Positions 12,101-32,100 of a stretch of DNA of 64,000 nucleotides are shown piece by piece; positions within the stretch are counted from its first letter, which is position 1; every line of letters begins with the position of its first letter. A program made the position numbers and the translations under genes. A model generated the notes under the pieces. The model saw nothing but the letters and a program-made list of their open reading frames with translations, was not told where the DNA came from and made no database searches. Source of the DNA: Podarcis bocagei (taxonomy: Eukaryota); the NCBI GenBank assembly GCA_964188305.1, contig OZ076892.1, one strand, 5' to 3'.

Positions 12101-12898
12101 AATCCCGTGGATTAGAAAAGCGGCGCCCGGGGCTGCAGGAGGAACCCGTCGCAGCCGTCGAAGGCGCCTCTCCTGCCCTGTCGCAATCTTCAAACCGGAG
12201 CCCTCGAGGCGCTCTGCCGAGATGGATCTCACCCCCGCCCCACCCCACCCCATAAACTATACTACGAGGAATCGAAATAAACACCAACATAGGGAAAGGA
12301 TCAGCCAGGAGACCTCGGCGGGCAACAAAGCCCGAGGAAGAGCAGAAGAAGGGACAGCCACAAAAAGACGCGAGCGCGCCTAGACGCCACGGAGAGGGGC
12401 TCACTTCAGACAAATACTCGAAATCGTGCAATCGCCTCCCCTGGCCCAGCACGCAAAGCCCCCAGTCCTCTTCCAGGTCCGGAAAAGTCATCAGACGGTA
12501 TCCCCCTCTCCCCGCGCGCGCCGCCGCCTTCTCACCTTGGCCCAAAACGTGTCCCCGGGGCAGGTCTCCGTCCGGCACCTCGATGGTGAAGACTTTGGAG
12601 GTGAAGCCAGCGGAGCAAGGTTGCGTCGGGTCCGCTAGCAGAGTCCCCACCTGAGAGGGGCAAACGGAGGGACAGTCAGGCACCTGAAGCCTCAGGGAAG
12701 CGGGAAAGGGAAACGTGCCCCTGTGCCCCCCTCCCCTCGAGGAACAACATCTCGCCCAGGGCACTGATGCGCCCCTCCGCTCTCCTTCCCCGGGATCCGC
12801 TGTTTACCGACACCGTCCTTCGGGGACCCGCTTAGTTAGGTACTCACCTCGAGGAGGAGAAACAAGAGGGCCCGCAGGCAGCTCCGCGGGAGCCCCAT
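179..12898 (-). CDS. CDH3: Type I classical cadherin, CDH3 (P-/B-cadherin-like), exons 1-5; 3' part continues beyond the left edge
   Basis: GT-AG exons in frame: 12898-12848 ([17 protein letters not shown], signal peptide), 12650-12536 (115 nt), 1917-1697 (prodomain), 721-575 (…LKRQKR|[23 protein letters not shown]), 334-179 (156 nt, [52 protein letters not shown]). Furin site, Trp2, PEN and LDRE motifs and a long intron 2 are present. CDH3 rather than CDH1 rests on the MGLPR N-terminus and B-cadherin-like EKETGWMKV, recalled from memory. Confidence 0.85.
1096..1321. mobile_element. Tc1/mariner (Tigger-like) MITE
   Basis: TA|CAGTGATACCTCAGGTTA … TAACCTGAGGTACCAGTG|TA; a related copy is at 32238-32467. 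Confidence 0.8.
4561..4926 (-). mobile_element. Sauria SINE
   Basis: (AAGGTA)n tail, i.e. (ACCTTT)n on minus; core gcggtacctatttatctacttgcac; tRNA-like head; flanking GCAGCTGCCTTA direct repeat. Confidence 0.85.
4990..5125. mobile_element. Palindromic hAT MITE (136 bp)
   Basis: CAGGCA…TGCCTG ends, perfect 8-bp TSD GTCTACAC, internal hairpin ctacaactcccat…atgggaattgtag. Confidence 0.85.
5345..5586. mobile_element. Tc1/mariner (Tigger-like) MITE
   Basis: TA|CAGTCGTACCTTGGTT … AACCAAGGTATGACTG|TA terminal inverted repeats. Confidence 0.8.
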
Positions 12899-16718: not shown

Positions 16719-16858
16719 NNNNNNNNNNNNNNNNNNNNNNNNNNNNNNNNNNNNNNNNNNNNNNNNNNNNNNNNNNNNNNNNNNNNNNNNNNNNNNNNNN
16801 NNNNNNNNNNNNNNNNNNNNNNNNNNNNNNNNNNNNNNNNNNNNNNNNNNNNNNNNNN
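16719..16858. other. Assembly gap (140 N)
   Basis: Run of N, flanked by a CR1-type tail fragment and a Sauria SINE. Confidence 1.
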
Positions 16859-18339: not shown

Positions 18340-19290
18340 TGTTCCTAGGAATAGTAGAAAGATAAGAAACAAAGGTTTGGGGAACAGATATCACAAATGG
18401 AGAGAGATCCGTTGGAATGTAATGTTAAAGTGCTGTCTAAAATGTATAAGTTATTATTGGACTGGGAAACAAAGGATGGGCAAGTAAAATCTTCAGTGAT
18501 ACATTGGGCAATAGATATTGGTTATAATATAGATATGGAAGCATGGGAACAATTGTGGAACACGCATATAAAATTTACAGCATGCTATGGTTTCAGAGAA
18601 AACTATATGAAAATGTTATATAGAATGTATCTAACACTGAGTAAACTGGCAAAAATATATAAATCAAAATCAAATAAGTGTTGGAAATGCAAAGAGAAAG
18701 AAGGTACTTTCTATCATATGTGGTGGTCCTGGCTAAAGCTTGCTGGGAAATGATATATAATGAATTGAAAAAGATGTTTAAAATAACATTTGTAAAAATA
18801 AAATAAAAACAGAAGCTTTCCTTCTGGGAATTATAGGGGTCGAACTACCTAAACAGTATAGAAATTTATTTATGTATGCGACTACAGCGGCAAGAATGTT
18901 ATTAGCCCAAAAATGGAAAGAAGAAGTCCCAATGAAAGACGACTGGATACAAAAACTCATGGGCTATGCAGAAATGGCAAAACTTACTGGAAAAATAAGA
19001 AATCAAGACAACAAACTTTTTATAAAAGAATGGAAATGGTTTACTGAATATGTACAAATAAATTGCATACAAATAAGGACATTGGCAGGATTATTGTAAT
19101 GACCTGCAGCTTCATAAGAGTAAATAATTCAAGCAGATGAATAAAAGAATCAGAATATGCAGGAAATAATAAATAGAAATTTAAGGAACCATAGAAAGAG
19201 GAGGAAGTCGAGTTTTGAAATGTTAAAATATTAAAATGCCTGTAAAACTATTGAAATGTATATAACTGAAAATTACAAAAAAAATAATTA
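18340..19290 (+). mobile_element. 5'-truncated L1/Tx1-type LINE, ORF2 C-terminus (degenerate)
   Basis: AT-rich. Zinc-knuckle KCWKCKEKEGTFYHMWWS and TAARMLLAQKWK motif in broken frames; A-rich 3' end. Confidence 0.8.
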
Positions 19291-19599
19291 AATGTTCCTG
19301 GGAATAGTGTGGGATCATCCCCTATTCAATCTGCCTCATCTGTGACTCAACAAAGGAGTCACAGGAGAAGATGTTCAACTGAACAGAGTTATCCTTCCCT
19401 CTCCTTCCCTTCCTTCCTCTCTGTCTCTCCTCCTTCCTCCTCTTTTTCCAAATTTGATGCCCCGCCTGGATTTCCTCTCTGGTCAGCGTGAAGAAACCTC
19501 CAGGAACAAAGAAGTCTAATAAAAGGATGTACCCACATTTTTTGAAAAGTATAATTTATGGAACATAATTTATTCAATTTACAGTATATGGGATTATTA

Positions 19600-20440
19600 T
19601 TTACCTCATATATCTGAAATTTGTCCTACAGTGTGGAATGGGTTTCTGTTGCTTAAGCTTACCGTAATTTGTTCCCACATATCGTAACACATTATTAGTA
19701 ACTTCTTAGGATTAGCTCCAAGACTCCCTATTCCCCCCCTCAAATTTATCTAATTCTAATTTAAGCATTGATAAAGCTTTCCATTAATTAGATTACATGC
19801 ATACCATATAACCAGCACAGACGCTTAATAAATCCCCAGTAACCCTTCATACGTGGGCTTAGATGTAGTGCAATTGCTAATGGTTACAGGGAAAGGGGGG
19901 AGAATAGGGGAACAAGAGGCAACCTCAATTTGCTCTCCTATGAATGTGAATAGGGTTTTAATTCATGTCGTTTGTGCGGACAGAGGCCTAATGAAAGGTG
20001 ATGACAGGCACAGCATCTCTTCCTGGTTTTGGTATAACAATTATTTCTGATGTGGACCAAGCACTTTGGAAGGATACCACTCCTCAAAACGTCATTTAAC
20101 AGCAAAATTAAAGAAGGCATTAAAGTCTCCTGAAAAGCTTTATCAAAAGCGCTACCAAAGCCGTCTGGTCCTGGTGTTGCTTTATGCCCCATTTGAATTC
20201 CTGAGTGATGTTGGATCTTGAGTGTAAGTACCAGCTTATTTTTTGCTAATGGCATGTCTTCATTGGCAGACATTGCTTGGCATATTTCGTCAGTGGCGTA
20301 TCTCAAGTTCCACTGGCCTTGGGAGGCTTCTGACAAATCCTATGGCCACTTGGCCAGCAAAACCGAAGTAAATGATTTGGAATTTTGCTTGTTCTTCTAC
20401 TTCCTCTTTCCTTTCATGCCTCTTAATTTATAAGCATAAG
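19600..20440 (-). mobile_element. Degenerate L1-type LINE fragment (ORF2, start of RT region)
   Basis: KATPGPDGFGSAFDKAFQETLMPSLILLLNDVLRSGILP resembles the K.PGPDG motif before the LINE RT domain; frame is disrupted. Confidence 0.7.
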
Positions 20441-22200
20441 AGAAAGGACTGCTCCTTCTAAAATCTTCATAAAAATGTGGAGAAAATTGTAGGACCAATA
20501 AATAATAACAATTTAATCTTTATTACACTTACACCCTGCCTTTCTTTCAATTCTTCTTCTTTATTCCATTACTATTTAAAATTAAGATGACAGGAATAAT
20601 AATAATACCTTACTTGTTTTGCATTGGCCTGGAGAAGTGCTTCCACCAGATCACCCAGTCTGGGGTCTTTTACTTAAATACCACTCTGGTGGTCAAAGTG
20701 GGTGAGTAAGTAGAGGCTGAAACCTTTCTGTATACTCACAGTGCCCTCTTGTGGTGGCCAAGTGCAGCGCTTCTGCCAACCATGTTAGCTTGAAACCAGT
20801 TTATAATATAAAGCAACAAACCTCGTTCAGAAGTTGAATGGTGGGCAGCCGTTCTTTGTGCACCGATGTGGAAAACCTCTGCTGCTGCTATCTGCACATC
20901 AGCTTGCTGTTAACAACTTCATGGAGAAATCTCTGCTATGGGGATTTAAAGACAACGTCAAGACAAATGAGGACCAGATCCTGGTTAGTCTTTCGATATA
21001 ATACAGTGGTGCTCATGTGTGAGTGTCTGCCTCCTTCTACTTACTCTTGCAGCACTTTCTCATGTTCCAGGAGAGCACCTTCCTCCAGGGCTAGGGTCTC
21101 GGTCACAGGAGGGTAAAAAGCCTTTACCAAGACACTTAGCCCAGAGGGCAGAGTTCCATAGGTCCAGCAGACAGAATCTGTCTAGGTCCAACATGCGATG
21201 TAGAAGCAAAGTCAGGAAATGGTCCACAGGGAGTTCAGGGGGGGTGGGGGTGCCAAAGCCAGGAACAAGGAGCCAGAGATCTGTGTTATTTCTGGCAACT
21301 GAAAGGCTCAAAGGGCAGGAGAGGGGTCTTATATACTCTGGCCTCCTAAACCACTCTCTAACCACAAATGCTGGCAGTGAAGGAGCATCAAGGCTTTCAC
21401 ATTCACAAGTAGACTGGGGGCCTGGTTCTATAAAGGCAAGCTGTATCGTTGCTCTTCAATCTGGACCAAAAGCTTTTGGCACCGGTGCTCTTGAGGACTG
21501 GGGCGGGGCAGGGGGCGCTTTCACCTCTTCTGACGGCTCCAAGGGTTCTTAAGCAGGTATCTCACCAGGGGCCCTCCTCATCACTTGTTCCAGGAGCCTC
21601 TGCCTGCTCCTCAAGGCCCTCAACCTGTGGGGCACCTGGTTTGCCTTCTGAGGAAGCTATGTCTGCCATGAGGTCAGGACTAGGCATGGCACTCTCCTGC
21701 TACTGTGAAAGGGGGACTGGACAGACCCTCCTCTGTTTCTGCACAAGGAAAATGGCTTCCTCTGTTTTCACAACAACACCCTCCTCCGCTCCATGTTTTA
21801 TTGCAAATTTCTGCTCTGAATCAAAACAAAGGGCAAAAGGCCATAAAACTGAGCTCTGATATTCGAAAGAGCTTCAGAGGCTTGAGTCCTGAGAATACCT
21901 GCTCCCAAATGAACCCTTACCCTGCCAGAATAAATGAGACTTGCACAATGGAGGGCAGTGCCACCTGCGAGAGATGTTCCTAGGGCACAAGCACACGCCC
22001 TTCACTTGGTCCCACATGCTGAATCAACTGTGGCCTGCTTCCATGTGGTGTGTCAAAATACTCCAGGCTTGCCAATTTGCCCTTAACCCTTCCCCCAAAG
22101 GGACTTGCCAGGCAGACTTTGCTCTAGCTTAAGTTACCTGGGTTGCCATCCCTTTGCCAGAGTTTTGCAGAAGGCAAGGAGCAAGAGCTGAAGCAGGACA

Positions 22201-25200
22201 ATGTGCTTCTTTAGGGTCAGCCTCCTGCTCTTCCTGGTTCTTCACTCTCAGGTAGGATTGTCCTCCAAAGAGCAAGCGAAGCGGGGCAAGTATCTTTGGT
22301 GTTGTAGAAGGATCTTCTTGGCATTAATGGTGGAGGGGCTGGGTTAAGTGTTTTGTAGGTGCAGAAGAGGTACCAACACATGAACCCACTTGATCACACC
22401 AGGCCAGGCTCTTCGTCCAACTAGTGTTTATTAGTAGCAATTCCCCAAGGCTCCAGGCAGTGATTTTGCTGTGCTGCTGAAACCAGAAATCCTTAAGGAT
22501 GGCAGCGGCTGGGTTTGAATCTGGGAATTCCTGCATGCAAAGTACAGGTGCTGTCCCCCAGCTGTGTTGCCATGGCCTTGTGGAAGAGCTGGGGTGTGGG
22601 GATAAAGATGAAGAGGAGCATGAACAGAGTGTGGGGGAGATGTGACCACCGAGTGAGCATGGGAAGGTTACTGGGCTGAGGAAGGTTTCATAATATTGGG
22701 CTTGTGTCTCTCTACACTGTACTCTGCTGGCAGCATAGTTGTTCAAAGCAAATAGGTTTCGAGAAAATAAGAGCAGTTGACAATGTTCCAAACTAATGTT
22801 GAATCAGCAAACATGCATTTCCTTTAAAAACAACCACCAGGGAGCACAAACCTTTAAACTGTAAACAGGGACCTTGAATCTTCCATGGGCTGCAAAGCAT
22901 CTAGCCTTGGAGAGGGATCAGATAACACAAATAAGGCTAGCCCAAGGGGTCAACAAGATGTTGGCCATGGGTGTGGGAGCCGTGGCAAGGCCTCTTGGCC
23001 CATCTCTCCTTTATCAGCTCTACCCTTGAATACTGCTCAATAGAGGCTGCAAAACAGACTGGTTGCTACCTGTGGCAGGAAGTGAAAGGACTTCAGGTAA
23101 ATAACAATAATGCAAACCCAATACTGACATTTAAGATAGAAGGAAGATACTCTTGACATAGAGGTGTGTCCAGATTCCAGGACGTGTCTTCCTTCACATG
23201 TTCCAGGATGGAATTCTGAGGTCCAGCACTGTCCTGTCCCGAGATCCCTACAAATCTTAAGGAGTGCCAAACTTGTCTTCACATAGAAGACGCCATGGGA
23301 TTGGGCTCTGAATGAGGGTTTTTTTAAAAAATAATGCAACTCTCTTTCCCCCTTGCAGGTCTCATTCCTATTTGCTTGGGCAGAAGTGCTGACCTTTCCA
23401 GAATCCAGACTTGATCTGAAGAGGCAGAAAAGGGATTTGCAACTTCTGCCTCCAATATTGGTCATGGAGAATGGCATCGGTCCCTACCCCAAGCGTCTGC
23501 TGCAGGTATAGACAGAGAGGGCAACTGCCTCTTTCTCTTCATGTGCCTTGAACAGCTCAGAACCACTATGCTTGGAGGACTTCTTTTCCTCCTATGAACC
23601 TGCTCAGAATCCCTCTCTGTGTTCTACCTCTGAGGGAGGCATAGAGGGAGGCAACAAGAAAACAGACCTTCTCAGTTTTGACATGTTCATTTGCTACCAG
23701 GCAGGTAAAGATGGCATGACTTTCTACAGTGTCACTGGGACTGGTGCAGACAGACCTCCTCAAGGTATCTTCATCCTTGAAAGAGAGACAGGCTGGCTGA
23801 TGGTGACCATGCCATTGGACAGAGAGACCAAAGACAAATACATTGTAAGTCCCTTTGTGCTAGCTTCTGCCACCCTGGAACCTCCCAGCACCTCTTAAAA
23901 CTGCCTTTGCCAACCTGGTGCCTTCCAGATCCTTTGGACTACTGCTGCCATCAGCCCAAGCATCATATAGCTGTGCTGGCTGGAGCTGATGGGACTCGTA
24001 GTTCAAAACTGCTGGAGAGCACCAGGTTGAGGAAGGCTGCTACGTGTTATGGGGCAGGGAAAGAGTGGAAATCACATGTTTGCTGCTGCTTTATGTCAGC
24101 TTTTGGGGAATCCCCGGGAAGCAATAGTATTAGCAACCATTATTTATGGGAAGGAGGAGAAAGTTCAGCTTAGTTTCATTTCTGAATTCTCAGCATACAG
24201 TATCTAAATACTTTTTAGCCCCTAATGTAAATTCCTGGGTGCTCTCGGTGTGAAGAGAAGGGCAGCTCTACACTCTTGTGGGAAGGTGTCTGGGAGGGTG
24301 AGAGGCAGCTTTGGGGAGTGTCTCAATTGCTACCCTGCTTGCTCTGCAGCTCTTTCTTCACGCTGTAAGTGCAACTGGGCAGCCTGTGGGGAACCGCACA
24401 GAGATCGTCATCAAGGTGCTTGATCAGAATGACAACAAGCCCCGTTTTACCCAGAGCATCTTCCATGGCTCCATAGCAGAAGGAGCCCCGCCAGGTACGT
24501 GTCTGTCTGTCTGGTTGCACATGCATGAACGAACTGACTGTATGGAAACCCCTAATATTTGCCTCTGAATGCCCATATCCTTTGGCCATTCTTTATGGAA
24601 GGAGAACCCACAGGGGGAGGGGGTATAATATTGTGTGCAAAACCCAGGCCCCTAACTGTGCTTTTTTCTACCTGTATGGCCTGGGCAGTCACTACTGAGC
24701 CCACCATAACTTGCGGACTGGCATAAAGGCAGTGCAGATCGCACCCAGCTGCTGCAGTTTGCAGAGGCTAAGAGGTAATTTTGGAGCTGTCTGGGGCAGA
24801 GTCAATTTGACCTCCAAGCTGGGATGATCTGGCTATGTTGCGGGTATGTGTGTGATGCACTTCAGAAGCTGAACTTTGGACCTTTGTGGCACACGCACCC
24901 AGGTACCTTTGTGACACAAGTATCAGCCACTGACATGGATGACGCTGTGAATTCCTACAATGGGGTAATCACCTACTCCCTCGCTATCCAGACCCCCACA
25001 AAGCCACAGAGCCAAATGTTTGCCATCGATAATAAAACAGGGGTCATCAGCTTGAACAAACCAGGACTTGACAGAACGGTAAGTGGCTGGGTCCTGGCTG
25101 TGTAGGGAGAGGGCATGATTAATGATGCTAATTTCCCCTTTGAGGCAACCCTTGGCTCTGCTGCTGTGCTTTACTCCTAGTGGAAACACTGGGCCATAAG

Positions 25201-26265
25201 GCACTGGTGGATTAGAGGCTAGCTGGGGGGGGGGGGACCAAGCAGGATGGGGAGGGGCTTGCAAGGGATTTCTGAAAGAGAAGAGGGAAGGCTTTGAGTC
25301 TGGAGCAGATGAACAGCATGACTGCCGCCTTCCAGTATCTGGAGGGCTGCCCTACAGAAGATGAAGTGGACATAAGCTGTACACATTTAAAGCACATGGC
25401 TTCCTCCAAAGAATCCTAGGAACTGCAGTTTGTCAAGGGTGCTGGGAATTGTAGCTCTGTGAGGGGCAAACTACATTTGCCCAAATCCTTTGGGGGAAGT
25501 CATGTGCTTTAATGGTATGGTTTGCAAGAATTAAGCATTTTCTTTTCACATTTTCCTAATAATAAGGGTGGTCTACCACAGGCATAGGCAAACTTGGCCC
25601 TCCAGATGTTTTTGGTCTACAACTCCCATGATCCCTAGCTAGCAGGACCAGTGGTCAGGGATGATGGGAACTGTAGTCCCAAAACATCTGGAGGGCCGAG
25701 TTTGCCTGTGCCTGGTCTAGCATAACAGCTGTGTCCCATTTCAGTTTGCTGTATCTGGAAGTACCCTAGTGAGTTTAAAGTTTCCTCAAGTTACTTGGCC
25801 AGTGGGGCTCTCAGGATCTTATACAACACTGCTTTGCCATGTGGTGCTTTGATCCCCTTTGCCCAAATGCTGATGGAATTATTTGTTTACAGGTAACCCC
25901 CCAATACACTCTGATCCTGCAGGCTACAGACTGCTTAGGAGAAGGTCTTAGCACTACAGCAACAGCAGTGATCCAAGTAAGGACTGGGAACTCACAAATA
26001 CTCCCGGGTAACCATGTGACTGCTCCTATATCTTCATTTTTGCTCTTGCTGAGGCATGACAGTATTGCCTATTCTCCCACAAAATGCTTGCTGCATTTTA
26101 CTCCAGTGAGAAGTCCCAAGAACTTCAAATGCATATTTTACAGATTAGGCTGAGTAGAGGTGGAGATGGAACCCTCCCCCCTTGCCCTGAAATGAATTGG
26201 GCCCCTTTCTCATGTTTTCAGGGGGCACCCGGTTGAGCCTGCCCTCATGGCACCAAAAGGGTTAA
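22201..26265 (+). CDS. Truncated E-cadherin-like paralogue: signal peptide + furin site + EC1-EC2 only (predicted secreted); 3' end uncertain
   Basis: In-frame GT-AG exons: 22201-22251 ([17 protein letters not shown]), 23359-23505 ([25 protein letters not shown]|[24 protein letters not shown]), 23701-23844 (…[22 protein letters not shown]), 24350-24494 ([31 protein letters not shown]…), 24903-25078 (…[13 protein letters not shown]…GLDRT), 25893-25976 or 26007 ([28 protein letters not shown]…), candidate terminal exon 26222-26265. Exon sizes and phases (51, 147, 144, 145, 176) match classical cadherin exons 1 and 4-7. No stops or frameshifts. Confidence 0.85.
25579..25714. mobile_element. Palindromic hAT MITE (136 bp), in an intron of the cadherin-like gene
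   Basis: CAGGCATAGGCAAACT…AGTTTGCCTGTGCCTG; TSD GTCTACCA/GTCTAGCA. Confidence 0.85.
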
Positions 26266-27413
26266 GACTTTCTGCTGAGTCATGACAGGCAGGCAGCCTG
26301 CCAGTGGAAGGCAAGAAGGAAGTGGAGTCAGAAGGGGCTGCATCAGAAATGCCCCAGAATGGATGAGAGAAACCAACTACCACAGAGGGACGGAGGAGGG
26401 AGACCCCAGGTGGTGAGAGATCCTAGGACGGTGGGTGGGCTCAGCCCAAGAGAAGGGAAAGCCTTCCTGCTTTGGTGTTTCATTGGGAAACTTGGCAAGG
26501 GGGTGGGAATGTATATTTCTGGCAGCTCAAGAAAAACAAGAAGCTTGAATGCCACACTCTTGATTGTCTTGGGGAGTTTCCTGGCATGGGCCAGAAAGTA
26601 AAGGAACTCTGTGGCCAGGGATCAAATGTTTAAGAAGGCAGTGAAATAATACATGGGGCAGGAAGGAGAGGGGCCACTGTTCAGTCCCACCTTCTGGGTG
26701 GAGAGGGGTCATAACTCAGTGTTCTTAGGTTCATCCCCAACATCTCCAGATAGGGCTAGGAAGGACCTCTGTTTGAAACCCAGGAGTACTGCTCTGCCAT
26801 GCTTAAGAGCAGAGGAATGCACTTGTCAGGCAGGGCTTCTCTCAAGAGGCTGGTGTTGTAAGGCACCTGCCCAGGCCCATCCTGACGCAGCCAGTGGGGA
26901 CCACTGCTGACCTTCACTGCCCCTGAACCTCCTCTGCACCTTCATTACTTGCTCACCTGCCCTCTCTGTACAAACAGTGGCAGGCACTATGTCAAGCTGC
27001 AGGGCTACAATTTGGGCAAATGAATGGGCAATGTGGACAGCAGCAAGCAAGCAGGGTCTGCCGAGGGCATCTTGTCTTTAACCCCCCCCTCACCCAGGAG
27101 CCAGCAGAGTTTGTATTTGAACACACAGCTGGTGGATGGGTGAGAAGTGGGTGGGGTGGGGTCCTCCCTCTCTCCCCACAACCACAACACCCCACAGAAA
27201 GCTCCCGTGCACACAGCACCTGGGAGAAAAAGCAAACATTTAAAAACAGGAAAAACTGCTGAGGGCAGCAAGAAAGAGCTTGGAAAATAAGGGCCTGCTG
27301 CTGAGGGTGGCAAGGACATCTTCCTTTGGGAATCGATGGACCTAGGAAACTGGGAGGGGGAGGAGCTCATACAGAGGCTTTTGCTCCACCCGGCTCTCCG
27401 TTCTGAATCCCAG

Positions 27414-28331
27414 GTGGCTAGTTCCGATGAGGTCCACCAAGCTTTCCTGACTGTCCACGCACTGAACGTGCTCACCGGCCTCCCTGCCCAAGGCCTGGCC
27501 ATGCACTTCTCTAAGCTGGAGGACCCCCAACGTCCGTGGGCAGAGCTCATGAGGAGGTAGGAGGGGATGAAGCAAGACAATCTCCCTCCCTCGGTAGGGC
27601 TGGGGCCGTTGCAGTTTCAGCCTCATTTATTCCGTTCCAGCAAGACAAACCCTGATGGGCGCTTGGACAGAAACAGCCCGATGCCCAGGGAGCTGAAACC
27701 TGGCACCTATAAGCTGCGCTTTGAGACGAGGGAGTACTGGGAGCAACAAGGATACCGCAGCTTCTACCCTTATGTGGAAGTAAGTTTGGTTCCCAGATGA
27801 AACTCACACCTGGAAGGGGGGGAAGGCTCCTTCCAACATAGGGAGGACTGATGATGGCAGGGACCACCACTCACTGCCCTTTGAGGGATGTAATTCCTGG
27901 CAGGAGAAGCACAACGTTGGAAAATGGGAGAAATCAGCATAAACTTCACATTATGAAGGCTGCACGCTGTGAAGTCCCTCAGAAACCTGCAGGAAGAGGC
28001 CCAGGTGGTTGGTAGGAGAGCTAGATGTTGTGCATGGGACATCCCTGAAAGAGCACAAAGCCAGAAGTGTGCGAGGACTGGGCACTAGGGGTGCTCCGGA
28101 CCAGGCATTTGGGCCCCTGACAAATGTCTTCTCATGGGCTAGGCCCAGTGCAGCGAAGAAAGGATCTCAAACCAAAGAGCACTACCAACCTCCTGCTATT
28201 CCCCCCTCCCTTGTCTTTACGCATCCTCTTGTCTCTCTGTTTAGATTGTCTTCACCATCACAGAGGAAGAAAAAGTGCACATCCCCTTGCTGCTCAGCCC
28301 CTATTCCTACACCACCTACAGGGGAAGCTAG
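27414..28331 (+). CDS. URAH: 5-hydroxyisourate hydrolase (transthyretin-like protein); three core exons, first coding exon unresolved
   Basis: Exons 27414-27556 (VASSDEVHQAFLTVHALNVLTGLPAQG…), 27641-27779 (KTNPDGRL…GTYKLRFETREYW…SFYPYVE), 28245-28331 (IVFTITEEEKVHIPLLLSPYSYTTYRGS*). Catalytic His, Arg and His plus the C-terminal YRGS signature are present. Adjacent to GAS8, as in mammals. Confidence 0.93.
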
Positions 28332-28952
28332 TGGGAGACCGGCCAGCAGGAGGGGCTGCTTCAGCAAACCGGGGTGCCTGTTCTGAGAGAGATGATGCAG
28401 TCCAGCGGATGGAGAGCTGTGGTTGCATCCACGGCCACCTCTGGCCCGAGCCTCAGGCTGGGGGCTTGGCCATGAGCAGCTGCCTGGTAGTAAATGTGAG
28501 ATTAATCTAAAGACTGATACTTGTAAGCCTCTTGTTTTAAATTGGAGATGCCATGAATTGGGTCTGGGTCCTTGACACACATGTGCTCTACTGATTAGGT
28601 AGGGCTCCCTCAGTTGCTGGGGAACATGAGTGGGGAGAGGGCTGCTGCACTCATGTCCTGATTGTGGGCTTCCCAGAGGCATCTGCTTGGCCACTGTGGG
28701 GAACAGGATGCTGGACTAGGTAGTCCTTTAGCCTGGATCCAGGAGCCAGGCTCTTCAGAGGTGCTTGAGTGGACGCAACATTGGTGTGGAGGACTTTGGA
28801 GGCTCTAGATAAGGTGGGATTAAGGAGTTCAGGGGGTCATTAATCAAGAGGAGGATGCTTTTCAAGTCCCCAAGCTCTGCCTTGATGTGGGTGGGAAAGA
28901 AAAAGGGAGGCTTTGCAGAGACTGAAGACTGAATAGCCCACCACAGGGCCTC

Positions 28953-28958
28953 TTTAAT
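28953..28958 (-). terminator. Candidate GAS8 polyadenylation signal
   Basis: TTTAAT on plus (ATTAAA on minus), about 155 nt past the GAS8 stop. Confidence 0.4.
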
Positions 28959-29111
28959 ACAAATGAGGGCTGGAGCAGACACAATCTCATTCCAGGGGGC
29001 TGCTCTCTCCCTCCCTCCCTCTCCTCTACGGCCACAGCAGGAGCGGGACAGTGGCTTGCTTGCACACAAGGCTTAGGCTGAAGGCATTCCAAAGTATGAT
29101 GTCAGGCTGTG

Positions 29112-32100
29112 CTACGTGGGGGTTGAGACAAACCCAGCAGGGCCCTGGCCCAGCGTGTGGCCGATCACGGAGGTTTCCAGGGGCTTGAAGCCCAAATTGT
29201 CCAAAGGGATCCCAAAGGCTGTGAGCTTGGCCTCGTACGTCCGCAACAAGTCATTGTGGGCCTGCAATGGGAGGCAATTGCAGGTTGAGGAGAGGGATCA
29301 AACATCACATGCCATAACACAGCCACCTAAGGCAACTTCTCTTGTCTATGCTCTGGTAATGCACCCATGGCAGTGGCGGCTGCATCCGTATTTCTCCAAA
29401 AGGATGCAAGAGAGCAGAAAAAGGCCAACTAAAATGGTAGCAGGCTAGACCATCTCAAGGAACAAATGCTTAGAACAGTGTTTCCCAAACGTTTTTGGGC
29501 AACGGCACACCTGCTTACCGGAAAAAAATCTCGCGGCACACCACCATTAAAGCCCCGCCCCGTGACGTCAGCGCGCAGCGTCACGCCGGGAGGGACGCAC
29601 AAAAGTGAACGTTTTTTCCCTCCCCCTTGCCGGGGTGGGAGGAGGCAGCAGAGCGAGGGCAGCTGAGGCGGCGGCGGCAGCTGAGGCGGCGGCGGCTGCG
29701 ATAGCGGGCGGAGGAGGAGCCGTCGCCGGGAGTTGCTGCTGCTGCTGTTGCTGCTGCTGCCCGGACATGCCGGCCTCCTCCTCCTCCGCTGTCTCGCGCT
29801 CCTCCCTTTTGCGCGCGCTGCCCCGCCGCTCGGCACGACCACCGCGGAGCCGCCCCGGCTCGACGCGGATCCTCGCCGCCGCCGCCTCTCGCCGCCGCCT
29901 CTCGCCCGCCTCCCTCCCACGGCACACCAGCCGGTGTCTCACGGCACACTAGTGTGCCGCGGAACACCGGTTGGGAAACACTGGCTTAGAACAAACTTGT
30001 TAATTTAGAAAAATGGGGCTGAAGGTGAATACAATGCAACTTGGTAGGTCAGATGAAGCGATGGCTAGTACAACATTTGTCAAACCCATCAGCCGTTCAC
30101 TGAGATGGGTAGGCAGTGGGCATTAGAAAAGACAGGGGAAGTACTTATTCACATTTCTTGGCATTAACCTATGGAACTCACTGCCACAGGATAGTGAATT
30201 CCTGCTAGCATAAATGGCTTTCAAACAAGGCATAAGTAAAAGCCAACTGCTAGGGAAAATATATTTCCTTCCTGGGTTGTGTCTAAAGAGACCTGCTCTC
30301 TACATTTTGCCCCAACAGACATTCAAGTACAATTATAGGGTTCTCCTCAGCTGGAGCTCTTACCTTGCACACTCTGGCTAGCTCGTACTGCAGATCCTTG
30401 ATGGCATTGTTTTTCGAATCCAGCACATCCTGTGAAAGAAGGTTGTTTGGGCGTTAACACATCAGGCAAGTGAACTGGCCCACAAGGGGACTAGTCAAGG
30501 CCCAGCCAGAGCTTTTGGCCTTTCTTAATGGGCCATGACAGGCCTATGCAAAGTTAGGTGCCCTTCTGCAGCACAGTCTCGTGCTTGGCTCTTTCCTTTC
30601 TGCAAATTCTGCATGCTGAAAGTCCTAATCTGTCTGTTGTTGGCTTCCATGATTTCATTAGGCAGTGCCAATGTATTTCCAAGCCTCTCTACGGCCATGA
30701 GGTTTAGAAACCTGCTATTACAAAATCAGGTAAAACCCGAGATTCTCATGGGTGCTGAATTTTGTATACAGTACTGCATCCCACACTTGGCATAGCAATC
30801 ACAGTGGAGCACTCCATCTACAAACAGGAGCTAATGCGCCTCTTGCCTCCTTGCACAATTTCCTCTTTGTGACTCAAATTAAGGCTCATCTGCGTTGCCC
30901 GCCAGTAATGGGAGATGAGAGCTGTGGGCTGGCATTTCTGCCACCAAGCCATTTTTTGCCCTATTTGGCACAGGAACTGGTGCTACAATACCCAGGGAAT
31001 CCCCTGTGGATGTGCCTGCTGCGCAAGCAGCAGCTGAAGGTAGGAATGTGGGAGGCCTGGTGGAAGGAGCAGCTGCCTCTGGGAAGAATCTCCAGTTACT
31101 GGCGCCAGCCGTGCTTGGAATGTGGAAGCCGCTAACTAAACCCCCTTCCCAGGCAGGCCAAGTCACGGGCGATAACTCTTGTTTCCATCCCATCAGGCAT
31201 TTCAGAGACTGGACAGGACAGGAAGCCTGAAGAGTGAGGAGGCCACAGAGGTCCCTATGGTGGAGAGCCTCCCTTGACTCTTGGGGCTGGAAACACAGAG
31301 GGGAGGGGCCCTGGCAGCATGATGGGCAGCCTCTGCTCCCCAGAAACAACTTGGTGTGCCAGGGGAATGCTTTGAAAGTGCAGATAGCCTTGCTGTGTAC
31401 CAAGGCGCTGTTAGAGAGAACCCAACCTTAGCAAAGAAAGCGGGCAGCTAGGAAATCAGCAACCAGGGAAACCCCATGGAGTGGAACGAGTTGAGAGAAA
31501 GCTGTGTGGCAAGCGATCCCCAAGCCACGCTTGTGTGGCTAGAAGGTTCTGACAGTCACAAGTGGCCGCAGGGAGAGAAGGAGGGAGGCAAGGAACTGAG
31601 AAGGCAGCCAGGAGCTCATTCTCTCTCTCCCTTTCCATCTCCGTTGGAGACTGAGCAGCAGAGCAGGAAACACCGCCCTGGCAACGAGGGCACATTGCCG
31701 CTTCAGTTCTCACAGTTCTCATGCTGCAAAGGGGCACGTGTGCTCTGTGTACTGAACGGATTCTGGGACCAGAATAAATGGCACATAGGTTCAGCAGATT
31801 TGCATGCAGAATCTCTTCCAACTCCACCAGCCAGAGGGAAAAGAAACTGAAGTCTCTGACCACTGGAACGTCCCCTTTCAGTCTGGCTCCTGCACATTTC
31901 CCCTGGCACAGCACCCTCATGCCAAGTGTATTCTCACAGCCAGAAGCACAACAGACACTTGCTGACTGCTTGTGCATTCTATGTCCCAAGAAAGCACCAA
32001 AGAGGCTCAGGTCAGATAGGAAGGGAACGCATTCCCCAGTAGAGCAATTCACCCCACCACTGGTTCAGTCACTGCTGCGAGGGTCCCTTTTGCCCACAGT

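Follow-up and report, generated by a model that had tools for sequence, protein, structure and literature searches.

The canonical 5-hydroxyisourate (HIU) hydrolase (HIUase) of animals, the product of the URAH gene, is an intracellular enzyme of ~120 residues. In PMC4764851, two HIUase genes are counted in the coelacanth Latimeria, the second being called coelacanth-specific, and 'a single gene … in all tetrapods'. Sauropsids keep a high liver expression of Urah despite the loss of liver Uox expression and of OHCU decarboxylase (PMC10517255). The URAH gene analyzed here belongs to the lizard Podarcis bocagei and lies in a 64,000-nucleotide stretch of contig OZ076892.1 (GenBank assembly GCA_964188305.1), referred to below as the window, to which all coordinates apply. 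Upstream of URAH are six exons that a preliminary description, made from the sequence alone, had read as a hidden and dedicated gene for a soluble protein of two extracellular cadherin domains (EC1-EC2), stopping before URAH. Instead, these exons very probably form the 5' two-thirds of one gene, the main mRNA of which, in contrast to the canonical enzyme, prefixes a secretion signal and two cadherin domains to HIUase and encodes a 371-residue signal peptide-EC1-EC2-HIUase fusion.

Exon structure and transcription of the fusion gene

Between positions 22201 and 25976 on the plus strand, six exons with AG/GT borders join into a single open frame of 747 nt (249 codons), as computed by a splicing script. 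Exon 1 (E1, 22201-22251, 51 nt, 17 codons) contains the ATG and the hydrophobic core of a signal peptide, and ends at a GT donor. Exon 2 (E2, 23359-23505), assigned from its frame, RNA joints and alignment, encodes the end of the signal peptide (…AWA), a short propeptide, an RQKR motif and the start of EC1, DLQLLPP, devoid of Trp2. Exon 3 (E3, 23701-23844) covers the EC1 core with a four-residue deletion as compared with other cadherins, while exon 4 (E4, 24350-24494) carries the HAV motif, the end of EC1 and the DQNDN calcium linker. The first half of EC2 (DMDD, NSYNG) is encoded by exon 5 (E5, 24903-25078) and its last strands by exon 6 (E6, 25893-25976), whose donor is located inside the ancestral exon, ahead of the DxNDN motif. 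The Pfam Cadherin profile scores above its cut-off on E3 and E5, and the sizes of E4 and E5 (145 and 176 nt) are presumably those of CDH1 exons 6-7.

Downstream of the cadherin-URAH intron (25977-27413, plus strand), which is retained at a low level in RNA contigs, three further plus-strand exons encode HIUase. URAH exon 1 (27414-27556) starts with the linker VASSDEVHQAF and continues into the first HIUase strand, which bears the catalytic His; URAH exon 2 (27641-27779) comprises the DGR motif with the catalytic Arg (PF00576, E 3.7e-10); and the last exon (28245-28331) ends with His-Ile-Pro…YRGS and the stop codon (PF00576, E 4.7e-10). Spliced together, E1-E6 and these three exons yield 1116 nt and 371 residues, with a single stop.

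The RNA libraries that support this chain were found by two run searches, each library holding ~27% of the sampled words of 23359-25976, which corresponds to the exon share. Four runs were mapped on window 22150-28149, and RNA contigs come from three of them (X1, X9 and X10), which represent three studies and two organism labels. Spliced contigs carry the joints 22251>23359 (depth 529 in X1), 23505>23701 (skipping 195 nt), 23844>24350, 24494>24903 and 25078>25893, a six-exon chain far beyond chance. The joint between the cadherin and URAH exons, 25976>27414 (GT..AG, skipping 1437 nt), is present in X1, X9 and X10 with depths of 1069, 8.4 and 187, respectively. The first URAH coding exon begins exactly at 27414, and the joint is in phase 0 on both sides. 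Further downstream, contigs contain the joint 27556>27641, and a loose end at 27779 in X1 reads into the last exon. In X1, the 25976>27414 joint lies in the very contig that represents URAH, and the depths of the cadherin exons are 529-832; therefore, essentially all URAH mRNA in that tissue begins with cadherin exons. In X9, cadherin exons are attached to roughly half of the URAH signal, and the remainder accompanies a low continuous cover of 26366-27425, fitting a URAH-only transcript. At position 23702, the RNA has T (GTA, Val67) where the window has C (GCA, Ala), Val being the residue of the other Podarcis proteins.

The six lesion-free GT-AG exons of the preliminary description, and the direct junction that it had proposed between the signal-peptide exon and the furin/EC1 exon, are thus borne out by both splicing and RNA. 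Its view of a gene ending before URAH is contradicted, as the 25976 donor joins URAH at 27414.

Two further features of the RNA contigs may be mentioned. The X1 contig with E1 extends, upstream of 22157 (AG at 22155-22156), into 30 letters that are not in the window; they may derive from an upstream non-coding exon (5' untranslated region), outside the window or in its 140-N gap at 16719-16858, or from a chimeric contig end. Short interspersed element (SINE) copies at 25579-25720 and 23900-24010 (introns 3 and 5) reach a contig-word depth of up to 99,000 and yield spurious joints between introns 3 and 5, so masking is needed when reading contig tables.

The gene is not hidden either, since models of the same length are already public for three congeners. 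RefSeq and GenBank contain 371-residue 'cadherin-1-like' proteins from P. muralis (XP_028595730), P. raffonei (XP_053255873) and P. lilfordi (CAI5782301), with the same exon chain, junctions and GAS8 position. They are 96-98% identical to the window product and differ from it by species-level substitutions only (6 residues in P. lilfordi, 14 in P. raffonei and 8-11 in P. muralis; models P0221, P0279, P0282 and P0287). In the P. lilfordi and P. raffonei loci, every splice site and the frame are intact. These entries come from automatic prediction, their name is misleading and no study devoted to them was found. The product named 'cadherin-1-like' by the NCBI pipeline is automatically named 'hydroxyisourate hydrolase' in UniProt. 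An adhesion module fused to a urate-pathway enzyme is thus filed under an uninformative name; its junction is RNA-supported here.

Domain organization and predicted mode of action

The product comprises a signal peptide, a propeptide of ~17 residues ending with RQKR, EC1-EC2, a linker of ~11 residues and a complete HIUase of transthyretin fold. Cleavage of the signal peptide after …AWA is a reading by the -3/-1 rule. The RQKR site is present though the cadherin prodomain is absent (no PF08758; E1 is joined directly to E2). As the preliminary description had stated, tblastn on the plus strand finds no prodomain, EC3-5, transmembrane or catenin-binding exon between E1 and URAH. The sole hydrophobic 19-mer scoring above 1.6 is the N-terminus, leaving the product with no second hydrophobic segment.

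Alignment of the mature cadherin part with solved structures returns E-cadherin EC1-2 (E 3e-74), C-cadherin (1e-71), P-cadherin (2e-67) and N-cadherin (8e-56), in agreement with the earlier proposal of a module nearer to CDH1 than to CDH3. The AlphaFold2 model of the 371 residues, computed from a 33-sequence alignment (mean predicted local distance difference test, pLDDT, 76), exhibits a signal helix (residues 3-23), disorder (residues 19-44), two cadherin sandwiches (residues 50-138 and 151-251) and a transthyretin-like domain (residues 259-367), the strands of the latter having pLDDT values mostly of 74-94. Foldseek superimposes this model onto E-cadherin EC1-2 with a template modelling (TM) score of 0.82 by target and 56% identity.

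The last 122 residues constitute a complete HIUase, aligning with the structures 2H1X and 7KCN (E 1e-24 to 1e-26). In the alignment, zebrafish HIUase 2H1X shares with the product the His residues within VHALN and VHIPLLLSP, the Arg within DGR and the closing YRGS. In alignment A1, His264 is invariant, and Arg304 and His355 are conserved in at least 90% of the sequences. The catalytic roles of these His/Arg/His residues are those that we take to have been assigned from the 2006 structures. Both the transthyretin-like fold and the features distinguishing HIUase from transthyretin, namely the catalytic His, Arg and His together with YRGS, are therefore found in the product.

If we assume that these modules behave as their relatives do, the fusion product would enter the endoplasmic reticulum, be cut after …AWA and probably after RQKR by a furin-type convertase, and then be secreted. 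EC1-EC2 would be rigidified by calcium, as the EC1-2 ligands are kept, and the HIUase domain would form the tetramer typical of its fold, so that four cadherin arms would surround an enzymatic core in one soluble particle. The HIUase site, with its catalytic His/Arg/His and YRGS intact, is probably active. The Podarcis arms would be unable to form Trp2 strand-swap dimers and would act, if at all, via another surface.

The cadherin arm in Podarcis and other lacertids

An alignment of 16 sequences shows that Trp2 is kept in every fusion protein except those of Podarcis. The motif is mostly DW(V/I)IPP, with variants in Rhineura and the coelacanth, while the mature Podarcis N-terminus reads DLQLLPP. 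In Podarcis, moreover, the residues aligned with E-cadherin Ile24-Asn27 are deleted and Lys14 is replaced by Ile. Glu89 and Met92 are replaced by Gly and Thr in the window, and this segment is species-variable within the genus (G/E/R-N-R/P-T). The window further differs from its congeners by Gly128/Arg130 versus Glu/Pro or Arg/Pro, besides Ala67 versus Val. We take the changed residues to be those with Trp2-pocket and X-dimer (Lys14) roles. In contrast, HAV, the fold-defining residues and all EC1-2 calcium ligands are kept, the calcium columns ENG, LDRE, DQNDN, DMDD, NSYNG and TD…GEG including several that show no variation in alignment A1. Splicing removes the EC2-EC3 DxNDN motif. With Trp2 lost and the pocket and Lys14 residues changed, the Podarcis arm, as read from these substitutions, probably no longer makes classical adhesive dimers. 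As a separate observation, residues 129-131 (window 24735-24737 region) form an N-R-T sequon at the former Trp2 pocket in the window and P. lilfordi, and N-P-T, which is no sequon, in P. raffonei and P. muralis.

Selection was estimated from three Podarcis genomes (the window, P. lilfordi and P. raffonei). The Nei-Gojobori omega (dN/dS) is 0.24-0.48 for the cadherin part and 0.05-0.12 for URAH. On the three-taxon tree, the cadherin part has accumulated 13 replacement and 10 silent changes where neutrality expects ~77% of replacements (one-sided p about 0.03), and the URAH part likewise shows fewer replacements than neutral (p about 2e-4). Purifying selection is thus strong on the HIUase part, and weaker but not absent on the cadherin part.

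Lacerta agilis, of the sister genus, shows what can happen to the arm in a close relative. A clean 1.83-kb deletion of window 22989-24822 has removed its exons 2-4, and exon 5 has suffered +2 and -4 indels as well as a GT>TT change of its donor, while exons 1 and 6 show no damage. In models P0280 and P0285, the signal-peptide exon is spliced directly to URAH; among the Gnomon models, the direct product has 139 residues and the one running via exon 6 has 167. Lacerta having lost the arm and kept the signal peptide and HIUase, secreted HIUase would seem to be the constrained part, at least in this lacertid lineage, and a product made of these two elements may be enough there.

The same data suggest another reading of the Podarcis gene, in which the fusion mRNA is real and its cadherin arm a functionless relic, the sole selected role being that of a signal peptide ahead of HIUase, and E2-E6 having simply not had time enough to break. 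Lacerta, where E1 and E6 are still spliced to URAH despite the loss of E2-E4 and the breakage of E5, points in this direction. So do the changes confined to Podarcis (Trp2, Ile24-Asn27 and Lys14, with position 89 varying between G, E and R among species), the Podarcis terminal branch of the EC1-EC2 tree (0.81, about four times the median of 0.2) and an omega four to eight times that of URAH. This omega is nonetheless below 1, and not a single indel or stop is found over 747 nt in the three Podarcis genomes, whereas the Lacerta E5 has acquired two indels and lost its donor. P. muralis, too, has a full-length protein model, and the calcium ligands, HAV and fold-defining residues listed above have all been preserved. 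We thus consider a relic arm unlikely.

In Zootoca vivipara, ~15 kb (locus L001, 9223-24144) with signal-peptide, prodomain and EC1-EC3 exons replace window 21344-25400, and the models splice them to URAH. On either side, the sequences align at 87-90%, and the homologue of exon 6 is located at L001 24449-24535. Exons 1-5 are not simple orthologues of those in the Zootoca model P0027, because window 21344-25400 finds no match in this species outside coding sequence. The cadherin module ahead of URAH has been swapped or re-acquired within Lacertidae.

Alternative ends, starts and exons

Without the junction to URAH, the cadherin exons might end on their own, and the preliminary description had computed the possible 3' ends. 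These are all reproduced, namely read-through of 25976 (307 residues), 26007>26222 splicing (273 residues) and 25976>26222 splicing (253 residues, ending with GAPG*). A stand-alone secreted EC1-EC2 protein made in one of these ways as a main product is very improbable. Unspliced contigs do pass the E6 donor, covering 25949-27382 in X1 and 25949-27055 in X10, and Gnomon proposes cadherin-only isoforms of the fusion gene in Mauremys (P0160, 320 residues), Emys (P0197, 256 residues) and a cormorant (P0047, 301 residues). The depth of these contigs is only 28.5 versus 1069 for the joint in X1, and 25 versus 187 in X10, read-through amounting to 3-13% of the spliced-junction depth. In X1, the cover extends right to the URAH acceptor, which is the pattern of a retained intron. 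None of the 15 RNA joints listed, out of 34, enters the 26222 acceptor, and the read-through tail is devoid of homology to anything. Such a protein is at most a minor isoform of the fusion gene.

Other products may start downstream of the cadherin exons. An in-frame ATG with an upstream extension of URAH exon 1 (27336-27413, plus strand) would give a 148-residue stand-alone URAH, with the N-terminus of the P. muralis UniProt model P0288, and an X9 contig (27268-27425) passes unspliced across the URAH acceptor. A candidate alternative first exon (26363-26416, plus strand; MDERNQLPQ…), which would provide URAH without a signal peptide, matches the N-termini of the Lacerta agilis isoforms P0284 and P0286; a junction from it is absent among the RNA joints listed. 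The URAH exons therefore probably also give products without a signal peptide, with internal starts at 27336 and perhaps 26363.

An optional cassette exon (23044-23096, plus strand) lies between E1 and E2. In P. muralis, it measures 63 nt and adds 21 residues in frame between E1 and E2 in isoform X1 (P0283). In the window, it is 53 nt long, 10 nt shorter, with an in-frame TGA, and its inclusion would therefore truncate the protein. The 63-nt, in-frame form also occurs in an RNA contig of run X9, which connects 23079 with 23356 through 24 additional letters.

That EC3-EC5, transmembrane and cytoplasmic exons of a full classical cadherin were lost by misassembly, as the N gap and the Zootoca model P0027 with its prodomain and EC3 might suggest, can be dismissed as extremely improbable, the gap being located 5 kb upstream of E1, the window being colinear with the P. 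lilfordi assembly over 20080-29477 and with that of P. raffonei over 19272-29477 (in two pieces, with extra P. raffonei sequence near 26222), RNA linking E6 directly to URAH, and the cadherin part likewise ending after EC2 in most of the other models from squamates, turtles and birds.

Several points weigh against the secreted fusion as we describe it. The contigs are not full-length, no single record covers E1 to the stop, and the linkage of all exons in one mRNA is drawn from overlapping contigs and Gnomon models. The RNA runs and the best-matching DNA carry different organism labels and the RNA pieces differ by ~1% from the window; hence, the RNA probably comes from very close relatives and not from the window's own individual. 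The raw reads of a bulk RNA run (X23; 12% of the run) provide essentially no reads on any exon, and expression is therefore tissue-restricted. At the protein level, secretion, cleavage by furin, tetramerization and catalysis are predictions. An omega near 0.4, together with the loss of the module in Lacerta, leaves room for an arm that is decaying in Podarcis too, and the constraint on HIUase could stem from the isoforms without signal peptide and not from the fusion.

Distribution and genomic context of the fusion

Proteins combining PF00028 and PF00576 are modelled in turtles, dozens of birds, snakes, geckos, Elgaria, Hemicordylus, Rhineura and the echidna, and also in canids, the wolverine (Gulo), the meerkat, frogs, salamanders and the coelacanth, whose sequence is presumably mRNA-derived. 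The cadherin prodomain is kept in the amphibian and coelacanth fusions and missing in most sauropsid ones, while the canid ones possess more EC repeats. In Crotalus, the cadherin-URAH junction AVIQ|VASS is identical to that of the window. These relatives emerged only from matches of 250-400 residues; in a library search with exon 5, the sole 100% match was an exon-sized open reading frame. The window gene belongs to this vertebrate family by its single reading frame, its spliced RNA, its PF00028+PF00576 relatives and its adjacency to GAS8. The latter is found downstream on the minus strand in all four lacertid loci compared, and presumably also adjoins the human URAH pseudogene. Judging from these protein models, the two-domain cadherin-HIUase architecture is old, extending from the coelacanth to birds and mammals, and is not a lizard innovation.

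In the EC1-EC2 tree, the window module groups with the other squamate fusion modules (support 84/79). The deep nodes do not settle, and descent from CDH1 or CDH3 and a single fusion event are therefore undecidable from this tree. A turtle 'Cadherin 1' model joins the turtle fusion modules (P0213 with P0042/P0156/P0158, 99/98), and the Numida fusion groups weakly with the tinamou CADH1 (P0196 with P0238/P0244, 89/63). These odd groupings may reflect gene conversion with CDH1 or mis-modelled entries.

The neighbouring cadherin, on the minus strand and head to head with the fusion gene, is a full-length gene of B-cadherin/CDH3 type, 83-91% identical to the Tiliqua 'blastomere cadherin-like' protein and to bird CADHK. 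Two of its exons, with the furin site and EC1, are located at 176-817, and its prodomain exons at 1709-1918 and 12537-12650. The preliminary description had proposed that the fusion module arose by inverted partial duplication within this CDH3/CDH1 cluster. The minus-strand CDH3-type neighbour is indeed there; the origin of the module was not a recent local event, as the architecture is shared from the coelacanth to birds and mammals and the module groups with those of other squamates.

On the other side, within the GAS8 gene region, a very GC-rich insertion of 506 bp (29478-29983) displays GCC/GCT-type runs and a CpG-dense core. It is bounded by inverted ends of ~14 nt, CAGTGTTTCCCAAAC … GTTGGGAAACACTG, and is missing at the loci of P. 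lilfordi, P. raffonei, Lacerta agilis and Zootoca, in all of which the alignment passes directly from 29477 to 29984. It resembles a young transposon of the miniature inverted-repeat (MITE) type.

Comparison with known systems

Our searches found no literature linking URAH or HIUase to a cadherin, and no account of a fusion of the two. None is mentioned in the papers on the evolution of HIUase and transthyretin or in those on gene fusions of uricolysis, and the word 'cadherin' is absent from a 2026 review of uricolytic enzyme fusions. While the gene itself is already in public annotation, a conserved family of secreted cadherin-HIUase chimeras thus appears undescribed in papers. More broadly, the URAH of most tetrapods and the second coelacanth HIUase gene might be not a plain gene for a peroxisomal-pathway enzyme but an ancient chimera, whose main mRNA encodes a secreted EC1-EC2-HIUase and which has gone unnoticed in the uricolysis and cadherin literature searched, a proposal for which we see the balance as even. 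If true, it could explain the high liver URAH of uricotelic sauropsids by an extracellular role outside uricolysis, either transthyretin-like or as a scavenger of HIU, played by a protein whose cadherin arm is multivalent. In that case, lacertids would offer a natural experiment, the arm being intact in most squamates, disarmed in Podarcis and deleted in Lacerta, and this stepwise disarming and loss provides a ready comparative test of the arm's purpose. The family also bears on the repeated acquisition of secretion by proteins of transthyretin fold.

The closest counterpart outside tetrapods is the '5-hydroxyisourate hydrolase B' of Latimeria menadoensis (CCT61362.2), for which Forconi et al. 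2014 is cited via PMC4764851. Similar to the window gene, it encodes a signal peptide, EC1-EC2 and HIUase in one open reading frame. In contrast to the window product, it has a full cadherin prodomain, retains Trp2 and comprises 497 residues. The accessible part of PMC4764851 does not mention its cadherin part.

As an enzyme, the window product resembles zebrafish HIUase 2H1X by its PF00576 fold, catalytic His/Arg/His and C-terminal YRGS, and it shares a signal peptide with transthyretin. HIUase is likewise one module of a fusion protein in the natural Urah-Urad fusions (allantoin synthase) of plants, diatoms and bacteria (PMC13751858). In those fusions, HIUase is paired with the enzyme that follows it in the pathway, whereas its partner in the window gene is an adhesion module without a link to urate.

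As a cadherin, the product shares with CDH1 and CDH3 the EC1-EC2 fold, HAV, the RQKR furin site and all EC1-2 calcium ligands. It differs from them by the absence of the prodomain, EC3-5, membrane anchor, catenin-binding tail and Trp2, and by its fusion to an enzyme. The calcium motifs of EC1-EC2 are therefore those of a type I classical cadherin, while the five EC domains followed by a transmembrane segment and tail, and the Trp2/pocket pair, are not. T-cadherin (CDH13) also works without Trp2 strand swapping. Like the window product, T-cadherin and shed soluble E-cadherin are cadherin ectodomains devoid of a transmembrane segment. These arise by proteolysis or have a glycosylphosphatidylinositol anchor and five EC domains, whereas the window product is genetically truncated after EC2 and continues into another fold.

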